From assembly GCA_019828565.1 (NCBI GenBank), contig JAHDYR010000033.1, positions 91,727-155,726 of the forward strand: a DNA stretch of 64,000 bases, read 5' to 3'. How positions within the stretch are numbered: position 1 is the stretch's first letter; every line of letters begins with the position of its first letter. The DNA comes from Carpediemonas membranifera BICM. Lineage: Eukaryota; Protista; Fornicata. Under the pieces are notes generated by a model. The model searched no databases. It was not told the origin of the DNA and saw only the letters and a list, made by a program, of their open reading frames with translations. The position numbers were made by a program, and so were the translations under genes. Shown here piece by piece: positions 4,996 through 62,755 of the stretch.

Positions 4996-5120
4996 TGTGG
5001 CAGTGTGCCAATCAAATAAAATATTTGATTGGCGATTCGATCCGCCATTCCGGTCGACACTGTTGTGTCGACTTCTCTTTGACTAAAGCACCAAGTTGTT
5101 TTTCCGTCCTCTCGAGCACA
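4996..5120 (+). repeat. E2 5' LTR (125 bp)
   Basis: TGTGGC...GCACA, identical to 9119-9243. Confidence 0.95.
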
Positions 5121-5131
5121 GTATTAATACT
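5120..5131 (+). promoter_or_regulatory. Palindrome at PBS position of E2: AGTATTAATACT
   Basis: Perfect 12-bp palindrome beginning at the LTR terminal A; no TGG tRNA-type PBS. Confidence 0.85.
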
Positions 5132-5138
5132 CTCCATC

Positions 5139-8100
5139 ATGGTGTTGCCTACTCCCATAGAGCAGCCCAGTATCCCCTTGGCCGGTCTTTCCGCCGACTC
5201 CTGGCGGGCCGCCAAGCGCTCATTCAGAAAGTTCCAGGTATACTACCCCGAGGCCAAGATCTCCCTGTTTTTAGACGACGACCTCTACAACGCCCTCGAG
5301 CTCCAGTTCGATGCCGATCTGGACACGCTCACTGACGAAGAGGTGGGTCACCTCATCGAGCGTCTGATCGCTCCAAGAGACCTACTCTCACTCAAGGAAC
5401 GTCTCGATAAGATTGTCTGTGCCGTGGACGCAACGCACAAGAAGTCTAGAATCGTTCTAGTCCGAGACTATATCCACCGCTTCAACGAGGTTTTTAACCT
5501 GCACACCGTACTACAACGTGATGACGACAACGACTCCGACTCCGAATCCGACAGCAGCTCCGACAGCGACTACGAAGAAGCAGCCATCGTCCCTGTAAGG
5601 CACGTCGACGGTGATGCCCCTGATGACGACGATCCCGATCCTCAATCCCCCTCAGGCTTTCTGAAAGACTGTATGAGGATCTTCACCGACAACCTACGTC
5701 CGAAGCCCTTCAAGGAGGTCATGAAGTTCAAGAAGGCTGAACGCAAGCCCACCGCCATGGATGATCTCCAGCGCCTTGCCCTCCGCGTTGCCAAACGCGA
5801 CGACAACGCCCGCGAGGAGGCTCTCCGCTACGGCTACTACGCCCAGAGCTCCACTCCAGCCAACAATAACGGCAACACCGGGCCCTCGGGCGACAACACC
5901 CGGCAGCCGGCACGCCCCTGTCGCCACTGTCAGGGCAACCACTTTGACCGAGATTGCCCCTCTCGTCAGTCACGTGGTCCCCAGACACAGGTCAACTTCG
6001 CGAAAAGCCGCGGAGCCGACGCCCTTAAGGTGCCCGCCTCATGCGGCACGTCCCACTTCCAAGCCATCATTGACACGGGCGCAGCAATCTCATGCACGAG
6101 TGATCGTTACGCAAAGATATGGCAGCTCCCCCGCACCAGCATCGACCACTCTACGCCAGCGGCTGACGACGTCGTCCTCCCAGTGTTCTCGGTGTCCGGA
6201 TCAAGGCTACAGTCAGCCCTTGCAGACTACCGCTCGGGCTGGCAGTCAGTCCAAATACCCTCGGACGAGCTCCGCTCTCGCGTCGTGCCACTTCTGCGAG
6301 AGTTCTCAGACATCTTCGAGCCGCTCGGTCCTGAACCGGCCAACGTTCCCCCCATGGTCTTGCACGTCAAGGACGATACCCTCGTGCAGATTAAGCCGCG
6401 CCGCCTCTCGCCTGATAACAGGAAGAAGACGAAGGAGATCGTAGCGGAGCTCGCCCAGAATGGCATCGTCACTCCCTCCAAAGGCCCTTTCGCCTCACCT
6501 ATCGTCCTCGTCAAGCAGAAAGACAAGACACGCATGTGCGTCGACTACTCGGAGCTGAACAAGCACCTCGTGGAGGATCACTTCCCGCTACCTAACATCA
6601 GAGAGTTTCTGATGTCCATGCGCGGCGCGAAGTGGTTCGCTGCTCTTGACCTCGTCAAGGGATATCACCAGCTTCCCCTCCACGAAGATTCACAAGCCCT
6701 CTCCGCCTTTGTCACGCCAGACGACTACCTACAGTACACCCGCGTCCCGTTCGGCCTTGCCTCGGCGCCCTCGTACTTCCAGCGTACCATCCAGGCTGTC
6801 ATAGCACCCGCCATTGCCACCGGCCGCTGCAAGGCGTACCTCGACGACATCCTCGAGGCCGCCCACTCAGATGACACGTTCATCGACGACCTGCGCACCA
6901 TATTCATGGCCTTGCGGGAGCATAACCTCAAGCTCTCGCCCGCAAAATGCGTCATCGGCGCCTCCGAGGTCAGATCGGTCGGCTTTATCGTCGACCGAAA
7001 TGGCATACATGTCGACCCCGACCGCATCCAGGCCATCGTCAGCCTCAGGCCCCCCGGGACCAGTCTGAGTTGAAGTCAATCCTCGGAAAGATCAACTACA
7101 TCGCACAGTTCCTGCCTGACGCCACCAAGTCACTCGCCACACTCAACCGGTCACTCAGAGCCGGCGAGTTCGTCTTCGGCGAGGAACAACTGACTGCTTT
7201 TGACGACATCAAGTCCCAGTTGGCGCTTCACATCAGCCTAACATACCCAGACCTCGATAGACCCTGGCACATTTACACCGACGCTTCATCACTTGGCGAA
7301 GGAGGCGTGCTAATACAAGATGAGGAGGACGGTACTCGCTCAATTCTGGCCTGTTTCCAGAAGACCTACGACAAGACCATGTCGAATTGGTCAACATACG
7401 AACAAGAGTTGCATGCCGTGATCTCTGTCCTCACCAACAAGGTCTTCGAACCCCTCTTCCAGATCAAGTCTGACCTACATGTCCACACCGACCATAGCAA
7501 CCTCGTCCAACTCAGACGGAAGGCCCCGACTGTCAAAAAGCTTCTCCGCTGGGCCCTACGACTATCCGAGTTTCGCTTCACCATTCAGCACGTCCGTGGC
7601 GTCGACAACGTCATTGCAGACGTCCTCTCCCGGATCCTCCCCGACGCGCCTGTAGTCAACGCTGTCGTCCAAGAGCCTCACTTCGACAAGTTCTCCGCCG
7701 TCCACAATGACGCGGTCGGACACTTCGGCGTCGACGAGTGCATTCGCCGTGTCAAAGCCGCCAAGACCACGTGGCCTGGCATGTACAAAGACATCAGACG
7801 CTGGATCAAGGCCTGCCCCCACTGCCAGCTGCATGCCCCTGCCAGAGAGTGCCCCATCGCGTATCACCCATCCTCCTCGGACGCTCCTTTCCACAGAGTT
7901 CAGGTCGACACTCTTGGGCCCCTACCCACCACGCCGTCGGGAAACTCCTACATCATCTCGATCGTGGACACCTTCTCCAGGTACATCAGACTGTTCCCAG
8001 CCACGTCCACTGACGCCCTCGCGGCCGCTCGCGCACTTTATGCTTACTGCGGTGCCTACGGCGTACCTCGCGAGATCCAGTCCGACAACGGCTCGCAGTT

Positions 8101-8890
8101 CACAGCGAAGCTAATAGATGAGCTTACATGCGCACTCTCGTTGAATCACCGCTTTTCCGCCCCTTACAGCCCACAGTCCAACGGCATTGTGGAAAGGTAC
8201 AACTTCGAGATCGAAAAGATCATCAAGCCCGCTACGATGCAACCCTGGGACGAACATCTGCCCTCTGTCGAGCTTATCCTCAATTCCAAGCAGGTTTCGT
8301 CCACCAAGGCCTCTCCTCTGGACATCCTCTTCCCATTCACCGAAGGGAAGGCCGATCCTTCGCGCCTAAAGGCCGCCCGCGAAGCCCTCGCTCGCTACGC
8401 CGCCAAGAAGGCTGCAATTCCCACCAATGTGCCCCCCACGCACGAGCCCGGCTCTCTCGTACTCCTCCTTCGCCCGAAGTCCGCCAAGATCGAGGCAAAC
8501 TGGCGCGGTCCGTTCAGATATCTGCGCCGCGGTGACCACACGTCGTCGTCGATCATCCAACACATCACGACCGATAAGACCATGGAAGTTTCCGACCGCC
8601 GCATCAAGGCCTGGACTGGCTCCACGGACCTCGACGAGCTCAAGACCCTAGTCGCCGAGCAAGAGGGGGAGTACGCCGTAGACCACATCGTCTCGGCCCG
8701 TCGTCCAGCCAGATCGAAGACCATATACCTCCTAGTCCACTGGGCCGGGTGCGAGTCAGCAGAGGATTCGGAGGTCACGCTCAACGCTGAGACAGCCCAG
8801 ATGGCCGCTCTCGACGACTTTCTCAACGTCAGCCCTTCATGGAGACAGCCAGTCGAGGCCGCCTGCCGCCGCAATGGCTGGCAACTCTAA
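5139..8890 (+). CDS. gag-pol: E2 gag-pol polyprotein (frameshift near 7050-7070)
   Basis: CRHCQGNHFDRDC knuckle, IIDTGA, YLDD, YTDAS, integrase DDE, GEYAVDHIV..HWAG chromodomain. Confidence 0.92.
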
Positions 8891-9118
8891 GCTACTGTCA
8901 AGGCAGGACATTGGTTCAGCGTCCTGCCCAAACAAATAAACGATCCGTGCTAGTACAAGTTGTCTCTACTCTCCCACCCGTCAGAGCCTTGAGGGAAGGT
9001 GTGCCCGGCCAAGATGTCCGCCCGTGTCCTGCTGCAGGACCCGCTGTGCGCCTGTCGCCAGGCGGAAATGAGCTTTGACCGCTCTTGAAGGTCTCGGGCT
9101 CCGCCTCTGGGGAGGTAG

Positions 9119-9243
9119 TGTGGCAGTGTGCCAATCAAATAAAATATTTGATTGGCGATTCGATCCGCCATTCCGGTCGACACTGTTGTGTCGACTTCTC
9201 TTTGACTAAAGCACCAAGTTGTTTTTCCGTCCTCTCGAGCACA
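9119..9243 (+). repeat. E2 3' LTR
   Basis: Identical to 4996-5120. Confidence 0.95.
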
Positions 9244-9247
9244 GGGC

Positions 9248-12037
9248 TGAGGGCGACGACCGTGTTCGGAGACGATCTCGCCGAGACAGTCGAGAGTCTG
9301 GTAGCCAAAATGACACTTCTCGGCGCGCAGCCTGATGTTCTTGTCACTGAGTAGAGCGAGCGTGCGCTGGGTGCGCATGACGAGTACCTCGGGCGATGGC
9401 GCGCCAGCAAAGATGTCGTCTATGTAGTTCCTGACGCCATCTGAGTATACCGGGCGCAGGACGTTGGCGATGGCCCGCTGGAATTGTGCGGGGAGGTTCT
9501 TTAGGCCAAACGGGGCGACCATATATTCGAAAAACTCGCCCGGGACCCGCACCGCGGACAGGTAACGGTGGGCATCCTTCAATGGCATCTGGTGAAACCC
9601 TTGGCGAAGGTCTAGACCGAAGAAGTACTTGCTGCCGACGAGGTCCTGGATGAGCGTGCGGGTATCTGTCATGGGGAAAGCGTCAGTCACAGTTGCCTCG
9701 TTGAGGGCCCTGTAGTCTGCGCAAAGTCGTAGTGGGCGGCGTCCGTCCGCGTCGGGCTTCTTCTGGACAATCACAGCCGGGCTAGAGACTGGGCCGTGTG
9801 CGTCGCGGATGAGCTGGGCTTCGTACATTTCATGGAGCTGTCGCTTGATCTCGGGAAGCCAGTCGGCGCGGATGCCGCGTGGGTTGGCTTGTGGCAGAAT
9901 GGCGTCCGGCTTCAGGTCAATGGTGGCTTCCGCGATGTCGGCGCCGCCGAGAGGCAGCTTGGGGTCGAAGACGTCGGCGTTGGCCTGGAGCACAGCGAGT
10001 AGCTCGTCGTGTAGAGGGAACGAGGGGTCAATGTCGAAGGTTGGCGTGGCGAAGGACGAGACGTCGTCCGGCAGGTCGTCAGTCTCCGAGTCAACCTCGT
10101 CGATGTATTGATTCTGGGCCGGTGTGACATCGTCGGCGGGGTCCTCCGCTGACGGTGGTAGCTGAATGTTGATGCCCGTGTCCGACATGAGGCCTAGGTG
10201 CCGGAGGAGGTCTGCCCCGAACAGGAACTTGTGGGCCTCCCCGGAGATGACTGGTACGGTCCACGTCAGCTCGACAGCGTTTGGTACGATGCCGTCGATA
10301 ACGAGCTCGGCTATGACGGCGGTGGTGTCCTCGCAAGGTCGCTGGTCGGCCATCTTCAGCGTGTAAGCATGATTTGTGATCATTACCGGGCCGGCCTCCT
10401 TCAGCGTGGCGAACGTGGCCTCCGAGATACAGGTCTTGGCGGCTGCCGGGTCGAGCTTCGCCCGCAGTCTCGTGCCGTTGACGAGGATGTCGTGGTAGAT
10501 CGGCTTACCGATGTTTTCGCGCTGCGCTGACGTGTCGACTTCGTCGATTGACTCATCGGTGTCGGACTCGGCGTCTATGTCGACCTCGTTGATGGATTGA
10601 CTGAGGCGCTCGAGCCGGTTCGTCTCCTTGTTTCGCGTCCAGCCTGCCGCTGGGTTAGGGGCTCTCGCGTTGCGTTTGGGCGCTTGGGTGGTCGTTGTTG
10701 CAGGTCGGTCAGGGTTGTTGTGGTGGCCAGGGGCCTTCTTGGGCTTGGCACCCACAACAGCTGGTTGAATAGGACGCGATGGTTGGGGGCGGCACTGCGC
10801 TGTGTCTTCAGATGAGGGCACGCCTGAGTGACGTGGGACGAGTTGTATCCGTGGTAGTCGCAGAAGTGGCGGAAGGTGGGGTTGATGTAGTAGTTCGCCT
10901 TGTCTTTCAGCTGGACATACGGGTCTGGGCCGCTGATCTTGCGGGCTATGGGTTTGCGTGTGCGGGATCCGCCTGTCGCTTGCTCACCGTGGGGTTGCGG
11001 GGGCTGGCCGGTGCGGAATGCTCTCCAAGGAACGACGATGTAACCGTCGTGGTCCTCTTTGAGGTCCCTAAGGTTATCAAGGACGTCATCGATGTCCTCT
11101 GCATCATCTATGATGTAGGAGTCGAAATAGTCCTTTGCTTCGGCGGAGAATCCCTTAAGTGCAAGCTCTCTGACTCTTGCGGCGAGAACCTTCCAAGGAA
11201 TGGCTTGCAGTGCAGGAGCAGAAGCATCAGTGTTCACGAGATCGATGAACTCGCGCAAAGCGGCAATAGTTGAGCGATGTTTGGATGCTTTGCCATAGAG
11301 TGCACCGGGAAGGTTGATGGACTTGATGCGCGCGCCGACGTCCAGGGACGGCATGAGTGTGACGGAGCAGGCGGCTACGATGTCGTCGGCCTCGTCATGG
11401 AGGTAGGCGCGAATGTCGGTGACGTCGTCCCAGTCGGACTCGTCACTGGACGTGTCGGAGTTGTTGGTGGCGGCAGCCTCGTCATCGGCCGGCTTGGGTG
11501 GGGCCAGGGCTGCGTTGACCTCGGCGACGTACTCGTCGTCGCGGAGGGGACATCTGGGTTGAACTTGTTGATGAGGGGCACATAAACCGGGGCGTTGTGG
11601 TCGATCTCGGCTACTGCAGCCGTGAATACGGCTTCTGCGCGGCGCTGTGCAGCCGCGGCCATCGGGCCTTCAGGAAAGGCCGCGGCCGCCGCTTCAGCGA
11701 GCATAAACAGGTCTTCTTCGAGAGCGGCGGTTAGACGGGCTACTGCCTGCTTGGGGGGTGGCGTGGAGGTGCTTGGGGGCGTGATGGGAAGTGAGAGCTT
11801 CATCTCGCGCCTAATGGCGCTGCGGATTACCGCATCGGGACATACATCGTCTTCTAGGTCCTCGAAGGTCTTATAATCAGAGGTGGGTCTCCAATTGGCC
11901 CGTAAGAACTCCTGCGAGCTGATGCTTAGGCATCTGAGGAACGATGTAGGAAATCTTGCATGAGGAAGTTCCCGCTTGTATTCCTTCGCGGCGGAGTTGA
12001 GCAGTGGAAGGGAACTTACGTCGAATTTCGTAGCCAT
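9248..12037 (-). CDS. gag-pol: E1 gag, protease and RT (frameshifted pieces 11375..12037, 10575..11354, 9248..10821)
   Basis: CDYHGYNSSHVTQAC knuckle, LDPAA protease site, CADYRALN, PFGL, YIDD. Confidence 0.88.
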
Positions 12038-12041
12038 AGGG

Positions 12042-12055
12042 AGTGATTAATCACT
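12042..12055 (-). promoter_or_regulatory. Palindrome at PBS position of E1: AGTGATTAATCACT
   Basis: Perfect 14-bp palindrome overlapping the last base of the 5' LTR; gag ATG lies 17 nt from the LTR. Confidence 0.85.
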
Positions 12056-12107
12056 GTGGCGTAAACGACGGGTATTCGAGAATTCGTTTTAATCAGGTGA
12101 TGCGTCA
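12055..12107 (-). repeat. E1 5' LTR (53 bp)
   Basis: Identical to 2926-2978. Confidence 0.95.
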
Positions 12108-13720
12108 TTGGCCCCACACTATTATTCCGAATGCTATCCTTGGCCATATGTAGGTCTGGAGTAGCAGTCTGCTGGCTACTGCCGGCATGTCCTTCCGTGT
12201 CCATCCTGTCCTTCGTACCAGTTTCTTGTATTTCTCACTCTGCTCCATTTTCTTGGCTATGCACGCCTTGAGGGGGTCCCTTCCGCTTGATATCCACAGT
12301 CCTAGGTACCTTTCACTCTCGCTAGCTTTGAGTGGGGTGCCTCCTAGTGTGATTTCCATGTCCTTGTCTCTTGCAATCAGTACGTTCTTGTCCAAGTTGA
12401 TCCTCATCTCGTGCGCTTCGACCACTTGGATGGCGATGTTGGATATCACCTCCGTATTTGTCTTTCCGTTCCCTGTGATCGCAGTGTCATCTACAAACAT
12501 TGTGATCTTTGCTGGGAGTTTCTCTCTGTATTTGTCCGGGGCCGCTTCAGGCAGCATGTCCACTGTGGCTGGTAGTCCTTGATGTAACTTCCGTATCATC
12601 GTTGGCCAGTTGACCATGAATAGTACAAAGAGCATGGGGGCGAGGACGCACCCCTGCTTTACGCCAGTGTTCGTCCTCTCCCACCTCTCCGCTCCGTCCA
12701 CTGTGATCCACGATTCCTCCAATGTGCCTCGGACTGCCCTTACTAATTGCGGGGCGACTCCCATCATCACTAGCTTCCTGACTAACATGTCCCTTGGGAC
12801 TGTGTCGTATGCCTTAGCTATGTCCAACATGACTGTAGCCGCATCGTCCAATGTCTGGTGCAGTTGTACTACGTGCATGATCTGGTTTGTGACCTGTTTC
12901 CTTCCCTGGAAACCTGCCTGCTCCATTGGTAGGTATTTGTCCGCCGTATCCTGCAGTCTTCCTTTTAGGAGCCTTCCATATACCCTGTATAACAGGGGTG
13001 TGAGTGAGATTGGTCTGAACGACGCTGCCTCCATTTTGTCCTTCCCCACCTTGTGGGTCGGGGACACGGTTGCGTATCTCCACGTGGTCGGCATCTTCCC
13101 TGTCCGGTAGACCTCATTCATGAGTGTTGTGACTTGTCTTATTCCCTGTTTTGGTAACTTCCTGAGTCTAGCTGCCGACATTCCATCCGGTCCTACTGCT
13201 GTGTCCGCCTTCATCCCGCTTATCGCCTTCCGTACCTCATCTTCCGTAAACTTGTCAATCGGCCTCTGCGGTAGTCCGAGTGGTTCCCACTCCGGTTCTC
13301 TACCTTTGCTGATGCCTGCGAACTGTCCGAGCAGGGCTCCTGCTATTTTTCCTTCGTCCGTTGTCAGTGCTCCTCCTACTTTGAGGACCTTCGGGGGGCC
13401 TCTGTACTGGGATTCACCCCACCATCGCTGGATTGCTCCGTCCACCATGGCCCTTGTGACCTTATACCCTTCCTTTGTACTGAGTTCTATTTCCTTAATC
13501 CACTGTTCTCTGCTCTCCTCCCTGTGTTGTTGGACCGCCTCGTTCATTCTGTCTTGCATCCTTCTTGCTCCCTCCTTGTTCCAGGGCAGCCTTCCGAGTG
13601 TAGTCCATAGGTCCTCCGGGAGGACTAGCTCCCTCTCTCTCCTCTTGGCTTCTCTCGGGCAGGGTCTGTCCATTATTTCCTTCCTCAGGATCCTCTCCCA
13701 TACTTCCGTGCTTTTCAGTC
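12108..13720 (-). CDS. LINE-A ORF2 reverse transcriptase domain (interrupted at both ends)
   Basis: GPDG, FRPISL, EQAGF, LDIAKAYD, GVKQG..LAPMLF, FVDD, YLG non-LTR RT motifs. Confidence 0.92.
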
Positions 13721-15992
13721 CGCCATCGAATTCAGCTAAGTCGAAAGACTATGTTCGGGGATGGATAAAAGGCCAACGGCCTGTCCCAGTAAACTGGTAC
13801 AGCGCCCCCATCAGCTCAGAAGGAGCGGCCTCAGCTTCCTGTCCGCCAAACTCAAAGGTGCATTCATGGATCTCCGCCGGGCGCGAGTGGGAGCTCCACG
13901 CCCAACACAGAGACACTATAAGAGGATAATGAACAGAGATTTAACAGAGAAAGCAGGGAAACCCACAGAGAACACCGAGAAGCCGCGACCACTTTTGGTG
14001 AAGGAGGAGTGATCAAGCAGAGGCACAGAGACCAAAGATAGCCCTCATGTAGGCACTACCTGGAGTGAAGTCAGTCCTAAAATCCCGAGACCACCCAGCG
14101 AGAAAATCAGCGTGCATTTTTGGACAGTGCGCCATTTCGCCGTAACGCAGTTTACGGCCGAACCAGAGAAAAAGAAGAAAACTGAGACCCCTACACAGTT
14201 GCAGGAGCCGCACAAGGCCACGCTGACCGATTTTCAGGACGATACATTAGCCAACTTTTTTTCATGCAGGCGAAAATGGCAACGAAGAATCGCAGCAAAA
14301 GTATCAGAGAATTACAGAGAAACAAACAGTGACCGCAGATAACGAACATATTTATAGTAAGCAACCATATGACCAACATAGACCATCCGGGAAGCTTTCA
14401 GAGACAGTGCATCGACGAACATCCTGAGACCAAATGCAGATATGCCTCAAAGGTATGCAGAGACCAAAGCAAACAGCAACATACAAATACTAACAGCACC
14501 TCCAGCAGATTCAGCAGCGTGCATGGACCACAGCGGCCACACTAGACCGACAGTTTTGCCTTTCAGAGGCTGAGACCAGACAACAACAGCACATCAAGAG
14601 CAGAGACCGAGCAGAGATCAGAGAATACCAGGGGCAGGTGAGGGTGGCCGGGCAGTCCACGGATGAGAAGGCCCCCCCCCTGCCGCCGCCGACACACCCC
14701 AGTCAGTAGGCGGTACCTGGGGCAGTGGCATGACAGTAGCGACGAACGTGGAATGGCCATCGAGCAGGTTGCTCTCTCAAGTCTCGCAGTAAACGCAAGA
14801 CTGGAACAGGAGGGAGTAAAGTAACGTATTGCAGAGTTTCAGAGACCATGCAGTCAATTCTGGTACCTTTTCTGGAACAAATAGTTCCAGAATTGGTTCC
14901 AGAATGCCAGAAAAAATGGCATTTGCAAGAAAAACTAAACGCGTTCAAACAATTTAGCGACGCCTTGCCACGGGGTGTAAAGCAATATGCAACTAATACT
15001 GGGCCCAAGGAACGTTGATACGTACTGCTCTCATGAACTCACTCACTTTTCAGCAGAGCTCGACCAAAAACTAACAGAGGCTTGCCCGAGGTGTGCTTAA
15101 GCCAGCTCCAACTCTCTCTCAGTCTGTGACAGCTCCCCCAAAAAATTATTCTTGCTCAAAGTTGAGGTTTTCGGAAATACTGCCAAAAAGTTTGCTTCTG
15201 CTCAAGAACGGGGGATGCGCGTTGGATACCGACACCGTTACGTAACAGTTTAACATTCATTATAACAGCGCTAGCCTCCAGATTTCCTTGCGCACGCCTT
15301 TATCTGGAGAAAATAGCACAAACTTTCGCAAGCAAACGCAAATCGATAGAAAAATATGTTTCATGTCCAACGGAGCTAAAACTGAGCACAGTGTTATTCA
15401 TCCTTCTATTCTACTAGTTTATCACTTCAAAAGGATCTGAACTTCAGTATTGATGGTGTTATAGGCACTGGTTCGGTTCGAGTCAAAACTGACTAAACTG
15501 TGACGACGGCTAGGTGTTGAAACATGCCATGCTCACTCGTAGCGTGGCGCTTAATAGTGCCAGAATTGCTTCAAATCAATGGAGGTTCATGTTTGTGCAT
15601 AAAGTGCACAAACATGAGAAGACACGAATTCGTCACTGAATTACAGACGATGCGCAGAAGAATCAAAGATTTGGTTCAAATAGAGGAATACTACCTCTTT
15701 GCAGACGATATCGCGAAGGAATACCTTGATGTTGCGTCCATATACCTGATGAAGGCAATCCTACGTTCTCAGTGAGGCAACTAGCAAACATGAACCGTAT
15801 CAAGAGACAAATATTGAAGCACTCCCCGTCCACATCATGTTTGGTAAATTTTCTGGTGTCATTCTGCTGTTAATATCAGACAAGCAAACAACGTAGTGAT
15901 GCGGAGAGACCGCGTGCTGCTAGAATACGCAGGGCATGATGCGCCCTGTTGATACCAGGAGCGCTGTCCTTAATCGCTGAGCTAACATTGCA

Positions 15993-20173: not shown

Positions 20174-20270
20174 TCCAGAGTAGATTTTCTACTAAAAATT
20201 GGCATTGTTACAACCAATCATTAACATTAATAGAGAAGGAGAATAAAGACTCACCAGCCCGCGGCCAATC

Positions 20271-31665: not shown

Positions 31666-31675
31666 CAGCACAGCT

Positions 31676-44683: not shown

Positions 44684-44744
44684 TGTGCCGGGGCGAAGAG
44701 ATTGGAACCTTTACATAAACTGCGGACGTGGATGCCTTATGACA
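44684..44744 (-). repeat. E7 3' LTR (61 bp), contains the pol stop codon
   Basis: Matches 60795-60855; ORF 44737..45225 stops inside it. Confidence 0.95.
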
Positions 44745-48910: not shown

Positions 48911-49032
48911 TGAGTAAAGGAGTTTTATTGGTCAGTACATCCCATTTGGTGTGTTTCCCCCAACTACCAATTTTTTTTCAACATTGGTAGTTTCACAATT
49001 TTCACATTACGTCACTTGTTTGGTGAAAAACA

Positions 49033-49958: not shown

Positions 49959-49982
49959 ATGAAATGAAAATAAAACAAGAAT

Positions 49983-50744
49983 TTATAGCTCCTGTGCCGA
50001 ACACTCTAAGTAGTAATTCATGATGGCTTGGTATACCTTGCGACGCAGCACATCACGCGATTCAGCCTCAGCACGTTCCGCATTCCGCTTGGCAATGACA
50101 GAAGTGAGCTGACTGAGTGTCTTAGCCTCCTTCTTCAGAACTCTGGTGGGTCTGGCGAAGATGAGATCCGCGTCGCGGTCACGGCAAGGCTTGCTCAGGA
50201 CGAGCTTGACGTCATCGACCGTCACACCGCACGATGAAGCAGCGAAGGCATGGACCTTAGCCCGGTAGGCGATGGGAATGCGGTGAAAGGCATCATCCAT
50301 CTCGCGGACAGTCGCGATGAGTGGGTCGTCCGTGTCCAGCTCATCTGTCTGGGCGTCAAGACTGAGGAGAGCCTTGAAGCGGTGACGCTTGTCCTCATCA
50401 CCGCCTCCCTGCCACTTGCGGCTGATCTCTTCGACCGACTGGAGATTGCCGTAGAGCTTGTCCTTCTTCAAGGAGGCTACTTTCATCTTAGGGACCTCGG
50501 CGGCAAACTTCTGGCTGAAGTCGACAACCCATCCGTTTGCGCGGGTAATATCGTCATTATTAAGGAGGAAATTGCTGATAAAGGTCTGAACGATCTCGAT
50601 GGGCGTCTTGTGAGCTTTTCGGGCTGTTTTCGTGGACTTGTTGGACTTGCTCTGGCTCTTTTGCTGCGCTTTCTTGCCAAGAGCCATTCTCCTCTCCTTT
50701 TGAGCTTCAGTGGCCTGTATATTGCCTTGTTTACTTCTTGCCAT
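49983..50744 (-). CDS. Hypothetical cargo protein with basic N-terminus
   Basis: 253-aa ORF, Lys-rich N-terminus, AT-rich flanks. Confidence 0.6.
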   Translation of the reverse strand: MARSKQGNIQATEAQKERRMALGKKAQQKSQSKSNKSTKTARKAHKTPIEIVQTFISNFLLNNDDITRANGWVVDFSQKFAAEVPKMKVASLKKDKLYGNLQSVEEISRKWQGGGDEDKRHRFKALLSLDAQTDELDTDDPLIATVREMDDAFHRIPIAYRAKVHAFAASSCGVTVDDVKLVLSKPCRDRDADLIFARPTRVLKKEAKTLSQLTSVIAKRNAERAEAESRDVLRRKVYQAIMNYYLECSAQEL

Positions 50745-51472
50745 CGTTGTTTCCTTAAAATGCGTGTGAAAATGTGAAATGAACTGTGACTCTCGACATT
50801 GCTGCGCAGCTATGGTATTCCAACGGCACAGAACGGGTTTATAGCATGCATATGATCCATTCTGGTGCCTTTATCCTCTATAACCAACATCAGTCCATCA
50901 AAATGAATCTTGCAACAGAATACTCATCCACACGCATCGAGAACGAAAAAGAAGCATATAACCAACATCAACAACCTAATAGAAGGCTGCATGCAAGCGT
51001 AGAGCTCTCCTAGTCAATTCTTCATTTTCACCACCATCGATCTCCACGTCAGGATGAAACCGTGCGCCCAAAAGCTCAGAGATGCCGTTATAGATGATAT
51101 AACGACGTCTCTGAGCTTTTCAGCGATTTCAGTTTCTGGCCATGGATAAGCTACAAATCCTGTCAATGTTGTCCTCAGAGGACACTGAAAAATTTAATCT
51201 GTGTCCTCTGAGGACCAAATTGACAAAATCGAAAATGGAGCGAGGAGATGTCCATCGAAAAACGGCCAAAACAGCGCAGGTGCAGAATGAGCTGAAAATC
51301 GGCCAAGGGGTAGCTCTTGGGTCTTTATGGCTGATCGGAGGTATTTACATGACAGCTGGCAATATTTATTGAGATAAAACGTATTTCATTTTTCGAGAAA
51401 GTCTTCTGAGGACCAAATTGACAATGGTTAACGAAGACATCATCTCTCTCGGCAAACTGAAGGAGACAATGC

Positions 51473-53599: not shown

Positions 53600-53624
53600 A
53601 AAAGAGATGTTTTGACATTTTAAT

Positions 53625-54435
53625 TCATTTCTTCCGCTTCTTGAGTGCCGGATACTGCTCCAGGAACCTTGTGAGATAGTTCGGATGAGAAATGGGCAGA
53701 CTCGGGAACCTAGCAATGGTTAAGACCTCACCCGCATCAAAGAAGATCTCGCCGTAACTGATACGAAGAAACTCTTCGGCCTGAATGACGTTCGTCGACT
53801 CAACCGCAAGGACTGGAAGGTCCTTGAGCAAACGGTTGGTGAACTGGCAGTTGGTGTCACTCTCACTGTGGTTGATGAGGTGTACACCAATGCCTTCACC
53901 TTCGCCGGCGTCGACGTGAAGGTTGCTAGCGTCGAATGAAATGCTGTGTAAAGGCATAATGAACAATGAACAAACACCATGTTGCTGTTATTCGCGTGGT
54001 AGTCCTCGTCGGACACAATCCTACCGGCGTAAATGCCGAGGAGCTTTCCGGGCTCAATTGCGGCAGTTGCAATGAGGCCTCTACCCACGTCCGTGTGGTC
54101 GGGGAGCCAGACAAGGCTGCACCTCAACGGCAATGGAGGGGTGGGTCAGCCGGGTGGATAACCAACTCGGGGGTTCGAGGGGAGGAAGGTCCTTCTCGGC
54201 CTCCTTAAGCTCCCCTGATCGACTCCTCGGGAGTGTTTGGGTAGATCGCGGCGACCAGATCCGGATGCAGTGCCTGAGTATGCACAACGGATTCAATGAT
54301 GGAATCTTCGCTTGAGGAATCCTCCTGAGAATCATTTGAAGGCGCAGACGGCGGCGTCTTGCCCGCAGTGGACGTAATGGGTATTCTGATACCCCCAGGC
54401 TGCGGCTTTGGTGGGAGCGCCTTTCTTCTCGCCAT
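53625..54435 (-). CDS. SET-domain lysine methyltransferase-like protein (frameshifted)
   Basis: GRGLIATAAIEPG..GIYAGRIV, VDA, LINHS, LRISYG..FF across ORFs 53720..54133 and 53625..53966. Confidence 0.75.
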
Positions 54436-54621
54436 CTGATTTTTTTTTGCAAACGGACACGCGGTATTTCTCGGGATTGATGGGGCCGTCTCACACCGTA
54501 AAGGACACACATACAATATCTTATCTGTAACACCAGAATGCTTGCTTATTGTGGTCCATATCCTTCCCTATAGCTGGTTCGGCCAACTACCAGTGTTGGA
54601 AAAAAAAGTGGTAGTTGCCAA

Positions 54622-55647
54622 ATGGAGAGGAAATTTGGCAAATTCGGTACCAGACGCATCAGCGACCATCCTCTCACGTATGAATGCGTCTGTGGAATCA
54701 CTAGGCCGCGTTCTGACCTTCGCAACCAGGGCCTGAAGGAATATGACGGAATCAGGTACACGCATGACTGCCCCTTCACCCTGAGCAAGCTTGTGAACCG
54801 CCGCATCGTTATCCTGCTCGAGCCAGTCCATGGCTTCGAAGCACCTACTTGTGCGAACCCGGTCTTCACTGTCACCGGGCTTGCTGGCTCCGAGGGGTAC
54901 CACAAGCGCATGAAGGCCATCCTCGATCTCGTCAGCGACGAGTGGCTCACCACGGTTGCCGTCAGTTTCGTCTCGACGACCCACCTCGGCTCCATACTGC
55001 AACAGTTGGCTGCAGAATTCGCCAATTTCGAGACATTCTGGGTTGTTTCTGGCCACAGCGAGACCACAACGTCGAGAATGATCGTTAATGCGAGCGCTAA
55101 CGAGTTCCTGTACCTTCACGATATCGTACAGATGATCCTCTTCGCTTTCCGTGAGCCATCCCTCGTCACCACCAGCCGGGTTCGGCTCATCTACTTCGCC
55201 ACCTGTACCGGAGCGGACAATAGCGAGTTCTCTCTGCTTAAGCAGTCCATTTCGACCCAGGCATACGAGCATACGTGCATCATTCTCACTCCGGAGAAAA
55301 TGCTTGCCAACGAACTCGTCCTGCAGGACTGCTTTTGGCTCTACCGCACTACATGCATGGACAACCCGCTCCACTTCGTCTCGCGTTACTTCTCCGGCTA
55401 TGGGCTCGCACCTGGCACAGCAGGGAGACGGGTTATCGCGAATGGATCAATGTCCATAACCCCGGGCGCGATTGAGATCCTCACAGCCACTCAGTTCCGC
55501 ACGCCAATCCCTCTTCCCGAGATGGTCGACCTTGTTTCTGAGGTACTTGCATATAGACCACTGCAGAGATCTCCGGCGGATGTTATGGCCTCGCGCTACA
55601 TTACTGAGATGACAGTTGCGCACAGAGCGGCACTGGAAGACACTTAA
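54622..55647 (+). CDS. Hypothetical protein with caspase/CHAT-like His-Cys motifs
   Basis: FWVVSGHS and RLIYFATCTGA. Confidence 0.45.
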   Translation: MERKFGKFGTRRISDHPLTYECVCGITRPRSDLRNQGLKEYDGIRYTHDCPFTLSKLVNRRIVILLEPVHGFEAPTCANPVFTVTGLAGSEGYHKRMKAILDLVSDEWLTTVAVSFVSTTHLGSILQQLAAEFANFETFWVVSGHSETTTSRMIVNASANEFLYLHDIVQMILFAFREPSLVTTSRVRLIYFATCTGADNSEFSLLKQSISTQAYEHTCIILTPEKMLANELVLQDCFWLYRTTCMDNPLHFVSRYFSGYGLAPGTAGRRVIANGSMSITPGAIEILTATQFRTPIPLPEMVDLVSEVLAYRPLQRSPADVMASRYITEMTVAHRAALEDT

Positions 55648-55670
55648 AGTTCAAAATCTCCCTATTTATC

Positions 55671-56891
55671 TTACTCAATTGGCTTCATATCCGCCACCTT
55701 CTGGTAGACAGTCATACACTGGTCGCAGAACCTGACACGATAGTCCTGGCCGTCGAGATGGAACTCAGCATAGCTGAAGTGTTTCTCTTCGCAGAACCAG
55801 TTTAGGCACGCCCGGCAGACGCCAGTGTCCTTTGTCGACTTGTCTCCGTCCTTGATACACGCGTGACATCTGTTAGACCTTCCTGCCAGACTGCAAGCTG
55901 CGCAAACCTTTCTGTTCTTACCATCAATCCTCTTCTCTCTGACACACTGAAGATGCATGAACTGATGGCAGAGATAGCACGTTTCATACTCGTTTCTTTT
56001 CATGTTTGGGTTGAAGTACCATTCAGGTGAGGCACAAACAGCGCATGCGAACAGTAACTTACGCTGATATAGCTTCAGAAACGTCGCTTGCTTGAGGGCG
56101 GGGACCTTATCGTTCATTTCAACGGCCTTGGGTGACTGCTTGAGGAGATCAGTGACAGTTGTGGAGAGTGAAGCCGTCACCATCGCGGCAACCTCCTTCA
56201 AGTCAGCCTCTTCGAGCCTCGATCGCTTCTGAGCAGGCTCATGCATCTGCGCATCAAAATTAAGCTTCTTGACGGGGGAATCAGGCTTGATGGTAGCCAA
56301 GTCAGCTCTTTTTCTGAGCTTTGGTACCAATGTTGTCACTGGAGTCTTTGTGGGTGTCTCTGCGGGTGTTTCTGCTGGGGTACGTGGCTCAGGCTGGAGC
56401 TTGCGATGCTTGATCCTGATTACAACGGCTGGAGGCCATTGAATGCCGGTGCAAGTGATCAGACTGGAGACATCGTGGAGTCCAAGTCCCCGAAACAGCA
56501 CAGACATCCTGTTTCTAAACTCCTGCAAGTGTTCAGCTGCATTTGCTCTGTCTCTGACAACCAGGTAGGGTATCTTTGTGCCAATGAGCTCTGTGCCACC
56601 CTTTCTACTTGCCACAAATGCCTGAATGGGCTCAGTAGTCGTGCGCCTGACGGAGTTTGCAATAGCAATCTTGCGAAAGCCGTTGCAGAGGCCCGATATC
56701 ACATCCTGCATGCCAAGGAGAGCGCGATGAACGTCAGAGGTCGTCAGACCGATAGTTGGGATGTCCGCGACGTCGAAAAAGCATTCCAGGAAGCTAGTCA
56801 CGAACAGCCGGCGGTACTCTGTTCTCTTATCCGATCCGCAAGACGTGCCCTGCGAAATCTCAGCTTTCTTCGCAGTTTCACTGGTCGTCAT
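55671..56891 (-). CDS. PHD-like/Cys-rich zinc-finger protein
   Basis: CAVC...TCYLCHQFMHLQC...CAAC plus second Cys cluster. Confidence 0.7.
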   Translation of the reverse strand: MTTSETAKKAEISQGTSCGSDKRTEYRRLFVTSFLECFFDVADIPTIGLTTSDVHRALLGMQDVISGLCNGFRKIAIANSVRRTTTEPIQAFVASRKGGTELIGTKIPYLVVRDRANAAEHLQEFRNRMSVLFRGLGLHDVSSLITCTGIQWPPAVVIRIKHRKLQPEPRTPAETPAETPTKTPVTTLVPKLRKRADLATIKPDSPVKKLNFDAQMHEPAQKRSRLEEADLKEVAAMVTASLSTTVTDLLKQSPKAVEMNDKVPALKQATFLKLYQRKLLFACAVCASPEWYFNPNMKRNEYETCYLCHQFMHLQCVREKRIDGKNRKVCAACSLAGRSNRCHACIKDGDKSTKDTGVCRACLNWFCEEKHFSYAEFHLDGQDYRVRFCDQCMTVYQKVADMKPIE

Positions 56892-57413
56892 ATTCTCATC
56901 TTAAACTGCGCAGGTGTTGACGACAATGTTCCGGTTATCCACGAACGAAAGGCTTAATCATATGACCAGTTGCCTCCATGAAGTCGGCAAGATACAAGAT
57001 TCTGTTCGAGAAATACGAAATCACATCACTGGGCTGAATTGCGAGGGTTTGGTGAATGAGAGGCTGAATGACACACAACACGTTCTGGAAGAGATAGGAG
57101 ATATGTTTATAGATGTAATACAGCAACTTAAAGACCACTAACTCGTTATTATCACTTTGAATAAGCAATGAATGGTTATGCAACATCAGCACCTACCTAC
57201 GAATCACAAGAATGCCCCTAGCACGTCGTATGCAAGCAAAAATGAGACTTACCCGTACCTTCCGCACGTTTCTCTACGTTTCACCAACGTTGGTGAAACG
57301 TGTGAAATAGTGAAAAAGATACGGGTGAATCTCATTTTTTCTTGCAGTTTCTTGTGCAAAAGGGTGTTTATCCTCCGTATATCCCCGGATTAACTGGCCA
57401 TTCTAACAGTATG

Positions 57414-60400
57414 CATTGTCGCTCGGTCGGAGGATTCTAGCGACTGTGGAGCTGGGGTCGAGTTGGTCTCCATACAGCATGGCGTGGGGTGTGACCCCAG
57501 TGGCGCTGCAGGTGGTTGTGTTCAGCAGCAGCTGAACTACCGGAAGGAGGTCGCTCCAACGGGAGAACTTGTCGAATTGGAGGATCAAACAGCGAAGATG
57601 CTTCATGACCTCCGCGTTACGACGCTCTACCAGCCCATTCGACTGAGGGTGGTAGGGGAGGGTGAATTGCTGGGTGATGTCCGCGCTTTCGAGCAGGGCC
57701 TTGACGACGTTGCCGGTGAACTCAGGCCCGTTGTCGGACTTGATGAACAGGGGAGTCCCATGACGGGTAATCACCTGGCGCCAGAGGGCCTCTGACGCTG
57801 CATCAGCTGTGTTCTCGTCCGTCGCGGCCAACTCAGTGTAGCGAGTAAACATATCGACCATAACTGTGATGTATCTGGAGCCGACTGCGTCTGCCGGGAT
57901 TGGACCAATAGTATCCACTGCGACAGTGTGGAACGGTTTGTACACTGCTGTTGTGCGGAGCTCTGCCTCGGCGAAGTTGCGTAGGCGAGCTTTCTGGCAC
58001 TCGTCACATGAGGCGATGAACTCCTCGACATCTGCTGTGCAGCCTGTCCAGGTATAGCCGTCTGCTCTCAGGCGTTCGATGGTAGCCTTGGCGCCGTGGT
58101 GTCCTCTGTGGGCGATCTGTATCAGCTCCTTTCGGAGGGGTCTGCACACGGTTGAAGTAGGGATGACGACGAGGCCGTCCTTGCGGCGAAGACCGTCGCT
58201 GTCTACGGTCAGCTTGGAGACGGTAGAGTCGTCTGTCTGGTGTTTGATGAGTGTGTCATGGTAGCGGGAGTCAGTCGTGATGGCTGCGACAGTGGGCGAG
58301 GTCGAGTGACCGCAGCGGCTCAGCGCGTCTGCGACTGCGTTCTGTAGGCCGGGAACGTGCTCGACATCGAACTTGTAGTCTGCTAATGTCAGTCTCCACC
58401 GGTTGATCTTGTCGTTCTCGGATGACTTGGCGATCATGTAAATAAGATTACGGTGGTCGGTCCGTAGGAGGAACCTCTTCAGGCGTAGGAGGGGTGACAG
58501 GGTCGGGTGTGTAAGGCAAAAGACAATGGCAAATAGCTCCTGCTCACACGTGGCCCAGCGCGACTGGGTTGACGTGAATGTGTGAGAGAAGTAGGCGAGG
58601 ACCTGTGTCTTGTCGTCCTTTGTCTGCCATAGTACGCCGCCAGTTGCAAAGGCCGAACGGCATCCTGAGGAATTCCTCGTAGACGCCCGGGGCGGTGAAG
58701 GCCGTCTTAGGCACGTCGTCTGGGTGCATGGCCACCTGCCAGTAGCCCGACGTCAGGTCTAGCGTCGCAAAGCGTGTGCAGCCCGACGCGAGGTTGAGGA
58801 GTTCTCGCATGTTGGGGATCGGGTGCCGGTCGGGTACTGTCCAAGAGTTGAGGCGGCCGTAGTCGATACAGAGACGGTAGGCGTCGCCCTTTGCGACCAG
58901 GACGATGGGGCTTGCGTAAGGCCCCTCAGAGGGCTGTGTGATCTCGTCCTGGCGCAGGCGCTCGACGTATGGCAACAGCCACTCCAGCTTCTTCGGGTGT
59001 AGGTTGCGCGGGCGAAGACGGATCGGAGGGGCGTTGTCGTAAAGCGGGATGCGCATAGGGGCAAACGAGCACGGCTGTTTGCTTATGACGGGGTCGAATA
59101 GGTGATCGAACCGACGGAGGATCGAATGTAGCTCGTCGGTCTGGGCCTTGGTGGAGAGCTCGTGTATCTCACACGCGTCGGTGTGAAACTCGCTTGAGGA
59201 GACGGCCTCGACGGGGGCGTCGAGGTACTTGTGGAGTGGGAGGCCATCGGTGGCGTCCTCCGGGCGTGAATCCGGAAGAAGTGGGATGTGGAGGCCACTC
59301 TCGGAGAGATAACCGAGCGCGCGAAGCACGTCGCATCCAATGAGCACACGTTCAGTGGCGCGCGTCATGATGTAGAGGATGAGATCGACGATGACGTTTC
59401 CAGATGTGCTGGGCAACGTGATCCGCGCTTGGACGTAGTGAGTGATGAGGATGGGCTCATTGGTAACGGACTGAACAGTAAATGGCTTTTCAAGCTCATG
59501 TGTGACGAGTTGGAGCGTCTTAACGGAGGTTGTGGAGATGATCGTGATTGCGGAGCCGCTATCGATCAATATCACCTGTTCTTGGTCATTCACAGCTCCC
59601 TTAACTGAGAATGCAGTTGAAGCGGCAACTTCTTCGATAAAGGCATCATCACAAGCATTGTGTGCGACTTCGACTTCGTGGACTCCTGGACGAGAGTTGA
59701 TCAGCTTGGATCTGTCCCGGAGCACCATGTTCCCAGCGCGTCTCTCGTCGGGGCGAGGCTGTGGCTGCTGGGATGACTGTTGCTGCTGCTTCTGAGCAGC
59801 TGGTGCCGGCTGTGGCTGAGCCGGTTTGTTGGCCGCTTGGGGCTGGCGTTGCGGCTGAGGTGCCGGTCTGGCGTCGCGGGCCGCGGCGGGGTGGCCTTTG
59901 GTAGCCTGGGGCTGTCCGGGCGTGCTGCCGCGGTGCGGGCAATCAGCCTTCCAGTGCATGCCTCCACACGAGCACGCGTATGGAGGAGGGCGCCGGCGCT
60001 CGCGGCGGGATCTGGTGTTGGCGTTCTGGCTATGTTTCGGGCCAGTGCTGGAGCTCGTGATGGAGCTCGTGCTGGAGGATGTGATGGATATGTCTTGAAT
60101 CACGCTTCCGAGGACTTCGCGGGCGTCAATGGCGTGCAGTATGAGCTCGCGCGTGTGCACAAATAAGCTATCGATGTCCCGGGCGCCAGAGAGGTCCCAC
60201 TTTTGCTGAATACGGTTGGCAAGTGAGACCGGGCGAAGGGCGGCGATAAAAGCTTTGGCGATGATCTTATCGAGTCCGCGGGTGGGGCTGGCTTTTCTCG
60301 GGGTGTCCTGCTCACTCGGCGTGCTGTCTGGCTTCTGGGTGATGACCTTGCTGAGGGCGGCCTCGTCTTCATCCACCTCGGCGGGCTCGGGCTCTGGCTT

Positions 60401-60778
60401 GGCGCCGAGCTCGGCGTTGAGAAGGGCATGGGCGTGGGAGCGCAGCTCCTCGGTCTCAGCCATGAGACGAGATACGGCCTCGATCGTGGACTTGGTTCGG
60501 TCCTGCGTGAGGGCCCGGATTTCTTGGATGGTTTTCTCAAGGGTTCTCGGGAAAGAAAGAGCGGTGATTTCGGCGAGAAGTTCTGCGTCGTTGAGTGCTT
60601 CGACGTCGACGTTGCGGACAAATCGGACATGACTGACTTGATCCTCGGTGAGGCACTCGTAAGCCGTTATGACGGTTGTGGTAGGAGCATGCTTCTGCGC
60701 GAACGTGAGGGCGCGTTTGAACGCGCGAACGGACTCTCTAGAGAAGTCCGATAGTGATGGCGGAATCCAATTATTCAT
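57414..60778 (-). pseudogene. gag-pol: E7 gag-pol with deletion of the RT catalytic half
   Basis: CSCGGMHWKADC, IDSGS; PFGLCN joins directly to RNase H TGGVLWQ near 58643; integrase 57414-58437. Confidence 0.85.
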
Positions 60779-60785
60779 TTCGGAA

Positions 60786-60795
60786 AGTGATCACT
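60786..60795 (-). promoter_or_regulatory. Palindrome at PBS position of E7: AGTGATCACT
   Basis: Perfect 10-bp palindrome starting at the LTR terminal A. Confidence 0.8.
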
Positions 60796-60855
60796 GTGCC
60801 GGGGCGAAGAGATTGGAACATTTACATAAACTGCGGACGTGGATGCCTTATGACA
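60795..60855 (-). repeat. E7 5' LTR
   Basis: Matches 44684-44744. Confidence 0.95.
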
Positions 60856-62737
60856 CCGGCCGCGTGGATGCGAGCTAACACGTCCTCCAGATTCTTCAGG
60901 AACTCGTCACGGTTCGCTCCAAAGACGACAATGTCATCTATGTAAGCGAGACACTGAGTATAAAGGGATTGACCCAGAATGTGTTCCATGGCTTTCTGGC
61001 AGTGGATGGGAGCATTACGAAGCCCAAAGGGCATCCGCTTATACTGGTATTTCTTCCCACCAGCCACAAAAGCGGTATACTTGCGCGAGTCCTGGTTGAT
61101 TATGATCTGGTGGAACGCTTTGGATAGGTCCAGCGTGGCGTAAAACTGTTGGCCTTGTAGGTGATCAATCAAGTCGTCGATGAGGGGTAGGGGATGCTCC
61201 TCGGCCTGGGTGATAAGGTTCAGCCGTCTAAAGTCGAGGCAGAGGCGAAGCTTGTTGCCTCTCTTCTTTGCCATGACGATGGGGTTATTGAAGGCTGAGT
61301 CCGAAGGCTCGATGACGTCCAGAGCAAGCAGCTCCTTAACCTGGCGATTAACCTCATCTTCCACCTGCTTGCCGTGACGATATGGGAAGCAGTTGATGAC
61401 CTGGTCATTCTTGGTCTTCAGGGAGAATGCTGGGAGCTTGGACGGGCTGGAAATGTCCCCGAATAGGCCTGGGAACTTTTCAACAATCCTTTGGCTGGCT
61501 TCTGCAAACTGCACATATTCTGGGGCTGTTCTCTCGACCTCGTTTTCGAACATCTCGTCGTCGTCGTTCTGGTTTGACGGAGTCGGGTCAGGCGAGGGTA
61601 TCTCGATCAGTCCCGCGCTGCGCAGGAGTGGGAACCCGATGATCGCATCGTAATGGTCGAGTGAGATGAGGATAAACTTTGTGCGTACAGAGAGGGGTCT
61701 ACCTGTCACAGAAGGGTACAGGACAGTATCGTAGGCCACGTGGGAGGTGTTGATTAGTTGGCCTGACATGAGGCGAACCCTGTGGCACTCAGGAATGGGG
61801 GTGAGGCCCAGGGACTTCGCTTTCGCCTCATGGAGGAAGTTGGCGGTGGCACCTGTGTCGTAGAGGGCGCGCACGGAGGATCCGTGCAGTCTGACTTTGA
61901 AGACTGGGCGGTGTTCTGCTTGATCGTCTTCAGGCGTTTCGGCTGACATTGCGTCTAAGTACTCTTCAACCGTAGCAGCGAGGAAATCGTGCGCGTAGGA
62001 CCTATCATTTACGTCCTTCTTCCGCGACTTGTGGGATTCCTTCTCGGCTTGCTGCATCTTCTTGGCTTGGGAGAGAGCGGCGCGCATGGTGTTGGCGATG
62101 GAGGACTTATCCTCAAAGGTCTTACAGCGTTCACGTAAGCGATCATTGCGGATGCCCTTCAGGAATTTGGCTACGAGGCTCGACTGCTTCGGGGGTACAG
62201 AGGCGCAGTTTTCGAGTGTCCGCTGGTAGATTAACGTGTAGTAGAGCATGGACTCATAAACGTTCTTGCTGGCGGTGTCAAAGGTAATCGAGTCAAATCG
62301 GTCGAGCGCGTCCTGACGGTCGAGGGGTCCGAAGATGTCGTTCACCATTGAGATAAATCTTTTGTTGAAGTCGTTAGGGGTCTCGGGTGTGTGAACGGGT
62401 AGATGCTCGGACTCGTCGGAGACCGAACTATCAGTGTCAGACTCGGTGTCGTCATCAGTGTCAGACTCAGGGGCGCGAGGAACAGAAGGGGGTCCCTAGG
62501 CGCAGCGCGGGGTTGCTGTGTGACCTCACGGGCACGAGTAATAAGGTCTTCGAGGTCCGGGCATTCGAGGAACATGATCTTCAAAACCGTCGCTGCGACG
62601 TAATCGAAGATCAGAGGCTTGGAAGCGGCGTTTCGTGCGTAATGGGCAATGAAGGCTTCCCGGAATGAATACCATGCCTTAGGCTTCGTACTAGTGAGAT
62701 AGGGTGCCAGGAAAGTTGATAGTTGTTCTACGTTCAT
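60856..62737 (-). CDS. gag-pol: E6 gag-PR-RT (frameshift ~62350-62500)
   Basis: YDTGA, CLDFRRLN, PFGL, YIDD. Confidence 0.9.
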
Positions 62738-62743
62738 CTAGAT

Positions 62744-62755
62744 AGTAATATTACT
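62744..62755 (-). promoter_or_regulatory. Palindrome at PBS position of E6: AGTAATATTACT
   Basis: Perfect 12-bp palindrome starting at the LTR terminal A. Confidence 0.85.

Follow-up and report, generated by a model that had tools for sequence, protein, structure and literature searches.

How minus-strand DNA synthesis is primed in the Ty3/Gypsy retrotransposons of the free-living protist Carpediemonas membranifera is the question raised by a 64,000-nt stretch of its genome (positions 91727-155726 of contig C34, JAHDYR010000033.1; genome of 24.2 Mb in 69 contigs), referred to below as the window. Its species assignment agrees with a beta-tubulin gene of this genome, which is identical to C. 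membranifera KAG9393716. Minus-strand priming is thought to have just two solutions, a host tRNA or the fold-back of the Tf1/sushi group, and the young, apparently active Gypsy radiation encountered here (at least 19 families, plus a second assembly) uses neither. Seven elements of the window, E1 to E7, carry instead a perfect palindrome at the position of the primer-binding site (PBS), at the very end of the 5' long terminal repeat (LTR). On balance, the sequences favor the reading in which this palindrome is the PBS: two genomic RNAs would pair through it, and one of them, cut at the 3' edge of the duplex, would prime the other. The palindromes, LTRs, and target-site duplications (TSDs) on which the argument is built are the following.

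12042-12055, minus strand: E1 palindrome, AGTGATTAATCACT, in the place of the PBS; the 5' LTR ends on its first A (12055)
12055-12107, minus strand: E1 5' LTR, 53 nt, TG..CA
2926-2978, minus strand: E1 3' LTR, 0 mismatches to the 5' LTR
12108-12111 and 2922-2925: E1 TSD, CCAA
5120-5131, plus strand: E2 palindrome, AGTATTAATACT
4996-5120, plus strand: E2 5' LTR, 125 nt
9119-9243, plus strand: E2 3' LTR, identical to the 5' LTR; the polypurine tract ends at 9118
4992-4995 and 9244-9247: E2 TSD, GGGC
31676-31687, minus strand: E3 palindrome, AATACTAGTATT
31687-31768, minus strand: E3 5' LTR, 82 nt; TSD AGCT
27410-27491, minus strand: E3 3' LTR, identical to the 5' LTR
34626-34637, minus strand: E4 palindrome, AGAATCGATTCT; the 5' LTR lies above 34637, with its start undefined
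39719-39730, plus strand: E5 palindrome, AGTATCGATACT
39601-39719, plus strand: E5 5' LTR, 119 nt, its extent taken from over 20 other genomic copies
62744-62755, minus strand: E6 palindrome, AGTAATATTACT
62755-62858, minus strand: E6 5' LTR, 104 nt; TSD ATTCG
42158-42261, minus strand: E6 3' LTR, 1 mismatch to the 5' LTR
60786-60795, minus strand: E7 palindrome, AGTGATCACT
60795-60855, minus strand: E7 5' LTR, 61 nt, TG..CA
44684-44744, minus strand: E7 3' LTR, 1 mismatch to the 5' LTR

A first-pass annotation of the window had placed perfect palindromes at these seven positions, and all of them were verified. In element orientation, (C/G)AC stands before every palindrome, and the A with which the palindrome opens is also the terminal LTR base. 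For E1, E2, E3, E6, and E7, the 3' LTR copy and the TSD define the LTR end with no recourse to the palindrome, while the end of the E5 LTR is set by other copies in the genome, the 3' LTRs in loci L003 and L012 ending on that same A. The earlier claim that the palindrome begins on the terminal A of the LTR is in this way independently fixed for six of the seven elements; for E4, which has no 3' LTR, the register is unconfirmed. The paired LTRs of each window element differ by 0-1 mismatches, indicating recent insertions, so that the palindromic site belongs to working copies.

All seven 5' LTR ends whose position is known independently, namely five ends in the window and two from a second assembly (loci L032 and L033), have an anchored palindrome of at least 10 nt, as against none of five 3' LTR ends. 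Among the CA sites of the window, 22 of 8846 (0.25%) carry one, true sites included. Palindromes of at least 10 nt are not enriched in general, 324 being found in 326 kb, which is about the chance expectation; the signal is thus positional. In nearly all families, the gag ATG follows 2-13 nt past the palindrome.

The arrangement extends well beyond the window, as seen in a survey that added about 60 loci of about 4 kb, retrieved with two polyprotein queries. Every Gypsy family that can be examined at its 5' end carries a short perfect palindrome at the PBS position. About 16 different palindromes are distributed over at least 19 C. membranifera families, which are deeply diverged on the reverse transcriptase (RT) tree. 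Further family palindromes at the 5' LTR end are AGTGTACACT, AGTAAGCTTACT, AGTACTAGTACT, AGTGAATTCACT, AATGTCGACATT, AATGATATCATT, ATTAGTACTAAT, and AGTAATTACT, whereas AGTATTAATACT recurs in two additional families and AGTGATCACT in one. In six families beyond the window, another LTR copy terminates exactly on the first A of the palindrome. The genome contains the 12-mer of E5 at 37 sites and its reversed control at 1; in 36 of the 37, AC precedes the 12-mer on one strand, and just 16 reproduce the exact context of E5. Two elements of the assembly GCA_002919055.1 show the same arrangement, with AATATCGATATT and AATAAGCTTATT and LTRs of 224 and 89 nt, and their proteins share at most 61% identity with anything in the C. 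membranifera genome. Locus L027 has no recognizable 5' end. Among distant metagenome relatives (L034, L068-L071; 28-39% protein identity), no palindromic site was recognized, their LTRs being long, incomplete, or off the contig and hence uninformative. The palindrome observation in the Gypsy elements of C. membranifera is confirmed as real, precise, and genome-wide.

TGG-type tRNA binding sites are usual in Ty3/Gypsy elements, albeit not universal. The first-pass annotation had seen none directly after the seven 5' LTRs, and none follows the LTR at any of the approximately 20 5' ends examined. Besides, the sites differ by family, and of the 63 tRNA places scored, none coincides with any of the 37 genomic sites of the E5 12-mer. 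ARAGORN called no tRNA genes, either in the window or in loci L031-L033, and no Rfam family was matched within the window. Priming by a host tRNA or a tRNA fragment has a negligible probability, which it shares with a chance pattern, expected at about 0.0025 per site and yet observed at seven ends out of seven; no point in favor of either was found.

The palindromes vary in sequence while keeping their symmetry. Fifteen family sites of the 12-nt kind were aligned without gaps and scored over the six nested pairs of the palindrome. Pairing is found in 90 of 90 pair cells (100%), with both sides changed at five of the six pairs (25 cells), as against 23-62% pairing in a control in which the partner was slid along. 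The rows of the alignment were found partly by palindrome search, so that full pairing is partly by construction; elements with independently defined ends show the same full symmetry. Sister families on the RT tree differ symmetrically, by GATC/GTAC, by G:C/A:T at pair 2, or by TCGA/AGCT. Covariation had been suggested as a check by the first-pass annotation, and it turned out that symmetry is preserved through double changes across deeply diverged families. For the homoduplexes, the predicted energies range from -11 to -18 kcal/mol.

This symmetry without sequence conservation points to nucleic-acid pairing rather than to a protein site. Several cores do resemble restriction sites (ATCGAT, ATTAAT, AAGCTT, GAATTC, TGATCA), as would suit a signal acting at the DNA level, either a site for a dimeric protein (integrase, host factor, or methyltransferase) or a site of the DNA intermediate. 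About 16 sequences would, however, demand as many specificities, and the site is internal instead of lying at a cDNA end, which leaves this explanation quite improbable.

Pairing might also serve something other than priming. Palindromes are classic retroviral dimer initiation signals (DIS), and those of C. membranifera could act only in dimer linkage, in packaging, or in translation control by the gag start, the primer then being a host small RNA (...ACU) or a protein annealing to the first bases. The semi-conserved outer bases, which read AGT...ACT in nine of the 15 sites of the alignment, and the proximity of the ATG fit such a signal. Nevertheless, it offers no reason for the exact register with the last LTR base, which is kept in seven cases out of seven, or for the E5 12-mer being essentially confined to the LTR-end context genome-wide. 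The inner bases covary, and the 3-4 outer bases common to the sites are too few for a shared host primer. A signal without a priming role is on these grounds unlikely. Nor is a flanking stem predicted around the palindrome that would present it in a hairpin loop, as DIS-type signals are presented.

The position of the site constrains the primer further. In the reverse transcription of LTR elements, the 3' end of the minus-strand primer sets the U5 end of the LTR; accordingly, the primer must anneal to the bases that follow the LTR, namely the palindrome. The primer would have to terminate in ...ACU or ...AUU depending on the family, which excludes mature tRNAs and their CCA ends, and with so few common bases a shared host RNA is hardly possible. 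As the first-pass annotation had stated, none of the window LTRs holds the full complement of its palindrome, the longest match being 7 nt (E1), and in seven of nine elements no LTR complement exceeds what chance would give. As the LTR complement is generally missing, self-priming in cis of the Tf1/sushi type, in which the 5' end of the transcript folds onto the site, fails. What could be invoked for it are partial complements of 7 nt in E1 (12089-12095) and 8 nt in L032 (L032:3867-3874), with p ~0.02 each. Both are within the presumed U3, on the upstream side of the TATA-like and poly(A)-like motifs, and so would not be at the RNA 5' end, making priming in cis very improbable.

A hairpin is another way in which a palindrome could act, and it has been considered in fungi. 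The GalEa Copia elements of Pezizomycotina lack a tRNA PBS and have a palindrome including the final A of the 5' LTR (Donnart et al. 2017, BMC Genomics 18:410, PMC5445492). Their Conserved Hairpin Site comprises a second complementary sequence 12-41 bp downstream, with no LTR complement and no fitting model (PMC5445492). By the same principle, an intramolecular hairpin could recruit or create the primer in C. membranifera, where the register is the same, LTR final A included, and minimum-energy folds permit a small hairpin of 4-5 bp with a 4-nt self-complementary loop to form from the palindrome. Yet no CHSeq2-like complement of at least 7 nt exists within 70 nt downstream in E1, E2, E3, E6, and E7 (maximum of 6 nt, in one element), and an ATG so close to the palindrome leaves no space for a conserved stem of non-coding sequence. 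Full folding of a 12-nt palindrome on itself is moreover prevented by the lack of a loop, so that a hairpin is rather improbable as the source of the primer, and the fold-back that the first-pass annotation had offered as an alternative is sterically poor. The only complement that the site has in all families is its own sequence.

A self-complementary site has a perfect partner in its counterpart on a co-packaged second genomic RNA. From its position, register, symmetry, and covariation, along with the absence of a tRNA-type site and of an LTR complement, it may be inferred that two RNAs form a duplex there, which is then cleaved. The Carpediemonas Gypsy lineage would no longer use a host tRNA, the palindrome being its PBS. 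A 10-14 bp RNA:RNA duplex would form directly 3' of U5, probably aided by the CCHC nucleocapsid part of Gag, and a CCHC knuckle is found in Gag in most families checked. One strand would be cut at the 3' edge of the duplex, the likely nuclease being the RNase H of the element by analogy with Tf1, in which the element RNase H cuts an 11-bp RNA duplex to make the primer. The new 3'-OH, standing opposite the U5 boundary, would be extended through the U5-R of the partner to give minus-strand strong-stop DNA, and the site of the uncut RNA would remain available for the second strand transfer. In most of the LTRs examined, motifs resembling a poly(A) signal are located 21-42 nt short of the LTR end, which suggests that both U5 and the strong-stop DNA are very short. 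The last U of the primer would pair with the terminal A of the LTR and, if kept at primer removal, would yield a DNA end in ...CA. In HIV-1 (human immunodeficiency virus type 1), the terminal tRNA nucleotide is likewise retained when the primer is removed, and a retained primer ribonucleotide would account for a palindrome starting on the A and not after it. The same duplex would double as a dimer linkage just before the gag ATG.

Several points weigh against priming by a sibling RNA. The partial complements of E1 and L032 hint at an additional or different interaction; they may be due to chance or represent a second contact with the RNA 3' end, as in the bipartite PBS of Ty3. No integrated head-to-head product (LTR, palindrome, inverted LTR) was found for E5 in the assembly with up to 2 mismatches. 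The symmetry of L015/L020 extends 3 nt into the presumed LTR, and L046 has a T before the first A of the palindrome, so that its LTR would end in TA instead of CA. Mechanistically, the model requires an asymmetric cut, in one RNA only, and, on a primer with an R-U5 tail, some means of ending plus-strand strong-stop synthesis, both of which it leaves unexplained. A 10-bp AU-rich duplex is also weak in comparison with the 18-bp tRNA:PBS duplex. Despite these points, the proposal of the first-pass annotation that the PBS is its own primer stands as the most economical reading, with the cut and the RNA ends as its conjectural part. By sequence logic, that is, a fixed register, a varying sequence, and a symmetry kept via double changes, the palindrome of the element itself appears to be the only plausible primer source.

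If this holds true, genome dimerization and priming would be a single event, the unexplained palindromic site of the fungal GalEa elements would be accounted for, and a retroelement would have a route to escape host tRNAs and, via family-specific sites, its competitors. Direct testing is feasible since C. membranifera can be cultured and the elements are small (about 4.2 kb, LTRs of 53-125 nt).

The window itself was resolved by self-comparison and protein mapping as a nest of LTR retrotransposons, five of the seven (E1, E3, E4, E6, and E7) lying on the minus strand. Their nesting and coding content are as follows, with open reading frames abbreviated as ORFs, protease as PR, and integrase as INT.

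2926-12107, minus strand: E1, containing E2
4996-9243, plus strand: E2, nested within E1
5139-8890, plus strand: E2 ORFs, with the gag ATG at 5139, gag-PR-RT to 7073, and RNase H-INT at 6947-8890
27410-31768, minus strand: E3, nested within E4
27550-31671, minus strand: E3 internal ORFs
34637, minus strand: 5' end of E4, which is interrupted by E3
33421-34614, minus strand: E4 gag-PR ORF
From 39601, plus strand: E5, containing E6
From 39733 (gag ATG), plus strand: E5 ORF, a polyprotein broken by the E6 insertion after 42157 and continuing after 62863
42158-62858, minus strand: E6, nested within E5 and containing E7
44684-60855, minus strand: E7, nested within E6

Pfam matches in the ORFs of E2, E3, E5, E6, and E7 follow the order PR-RT-RNase H-INT, which identifies the window elements as Ty3/Gypsy. 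The RT blocks of the other elements share 32-47% identity with that of E5, and the families are distinct. A weak chromodomain match was found in the relatives P0001 and P0002. TG..CA LTRs, a TSD of 4-5 bp, and a purine-rich tract before the 3' LTR are all present in E1, E2, E3, and E6. The LTRs of the window are very short (53, 61, 82, 104, 119, and 125 nt). Those of E1 and E7, with just 53 and 61 nt in autonomous elements of about 4.2-4.4 kb in total, are among the shortest known for such elements, and TATA-like and poly(A)-signal-like motifs are packed inside them. The 224-nt LTR of the relative from GCA_002919055.1 (L032:3760-3983) has two motifs, GGTTCGAGTCC and GGGTTCGATAT, similar to a Pol III B-box or the T-arm of a tRNA, with no tRNA called there by ARAGORN.

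Some structures of the window are peculiar in other respects. A perfect 23-nt direct duplication, starting TTAGCTCGC, flanks E7 (60856-60878 and 44661-44683), compared with 4-5 bp for its neighbors; it is either a target duplication of unusual length or the product of repair. Two blocks of about 12-13 kb with lower G+C and without Gypsy genes interrupt E4 (~14000-27306) and E7 (44763-57413). A 48-nt stretch at one end is identical between the two (27259-27306 and 57366-57413). They contain long ORFs without Pfam match as well as a protein kinase ORF (25896-26918), and may be large gene-carrying DNA transposons. Near the junction between E7 and its inserted block stands a perfect 26-nt palindrome (57276-57301; ACGTTTCACCAAC then its complement). 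The 281 nt directly upstream of the E5 5' LTR (39320-39600) have an inverted, 100% identical copy about 26 kb away (L031:1824-2104, window-equivalent 65824-66104), so that E5 is itself inserted in another repeated element. Elsewhere in the genome, the E5 family forms a tandem array (G000:C1:899800-911800; L007-L009, L013, L014, L016) with a period of about 3943 nt, in which LTRs and internal parts alternate (LTR, internal part, LTR, internal part), the LTRs being shared and the palindrome present in every unit. The sole evident host gene fragment of the window is an ORF at 71-1210 with an ion-transport domain (PF00520).

Compared with known systems, the Carpediemonas site is closest to a palindrome already on record. 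The first-pass annotation knew of no description of such a site, which is true of the mechanism and not of the palindrome: a GalEa palindrome with the LTR final A had been published, with no mechanism given (PMC5445492). Literature searches for a palindromic PBS in varied wordings retrieved nothing beyond the GalEa case, and no paper treating the LTR elements of Carpediemonas was found. GalEa and Carpediemonas elements are alike in lacking a tRNA PBS, in having a palindrome with the LTR final A (ACTGATCAGT or ACTAATTAGT in GalEa; AGTGATCACT and others in Carpediemonas), and in having no LTR complement and an unexplained mechanism. They differ in that GalEa elements are Copia elements of Pezizomycotina, whereas those of Carpediemonas are Gypsy elements of a metamonad, as their domain order indicates; a Copia RT profile search (PF07727, RVT_2) had no match in the genome, with a control search equally silent. 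The GalEa palindrome is nearly invariant, two sequences covering 85% of families (PMC5445492), and is accompanied by a hairpin arm. In Carpediemonas, by contrast, the sequence varies freely with its symmetry kept, no second downstream sequence was found, and the ATG comes at once.

The Tf1/sushi group includes Tf1, Tf2, Maggy, Skippy, and sushi-ichi. Its members resemble the Carpediemonas elements in being Gypsy elements without a tRNA primer, and the duplexes are of similar size, about 11 bp in Tf1 and 10-14 bp as proposed here. However, in Tf1 the transcript supplies the partner from its own first 11 nt. This needs an LTR complement, which is missing in seven of nine Carpediemonas-type elements. 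Unlike in Tf1, the only available partner in Carpediemonas is the site itself on a second RNA. Retroviral palindromes such as the HIV-1 DIS and the PBS palindrome of MMTV (mouse mammary tumor virus) link two genomic RNAs through self-complementarity of the 5' leader, as proposed here. They are nonetheless additional to a tRNA PBS and usually placed in a hairpin loop, whereas the Carpediemonas palindrome abuts the LTR and occupies the PBS position. A replaced PBS is also known from Skipper, a dictyostelid chromodomain Gypsy element with a non-canonical sequence in place of the TGG PBS and no LTR complement, for which self-priming of unknown kind was proposed (Spaller et al. 2016, PMC5006619); there, the site is a degenerate polypyrimidine tract and not a palindrome (PMC5006619).

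The Carpediemonas site is thus related to a known non-tRNA palindromic primer site and stands outside the Tf1/sushi and GalEa classes, whose defining features it lacks. A broader view, slightly short of an even chance, is that there exists a third mode of minus-strand priming, in which co-packaged RNAs would pair through a palindromic PBS and one of them would be sacrificed. This mode would have arisen independently in the Gypsy elements of Carpediemonas and the Copia elements of the fungal GalEa group, with family-specific sequences preventing priming and packaging across families.

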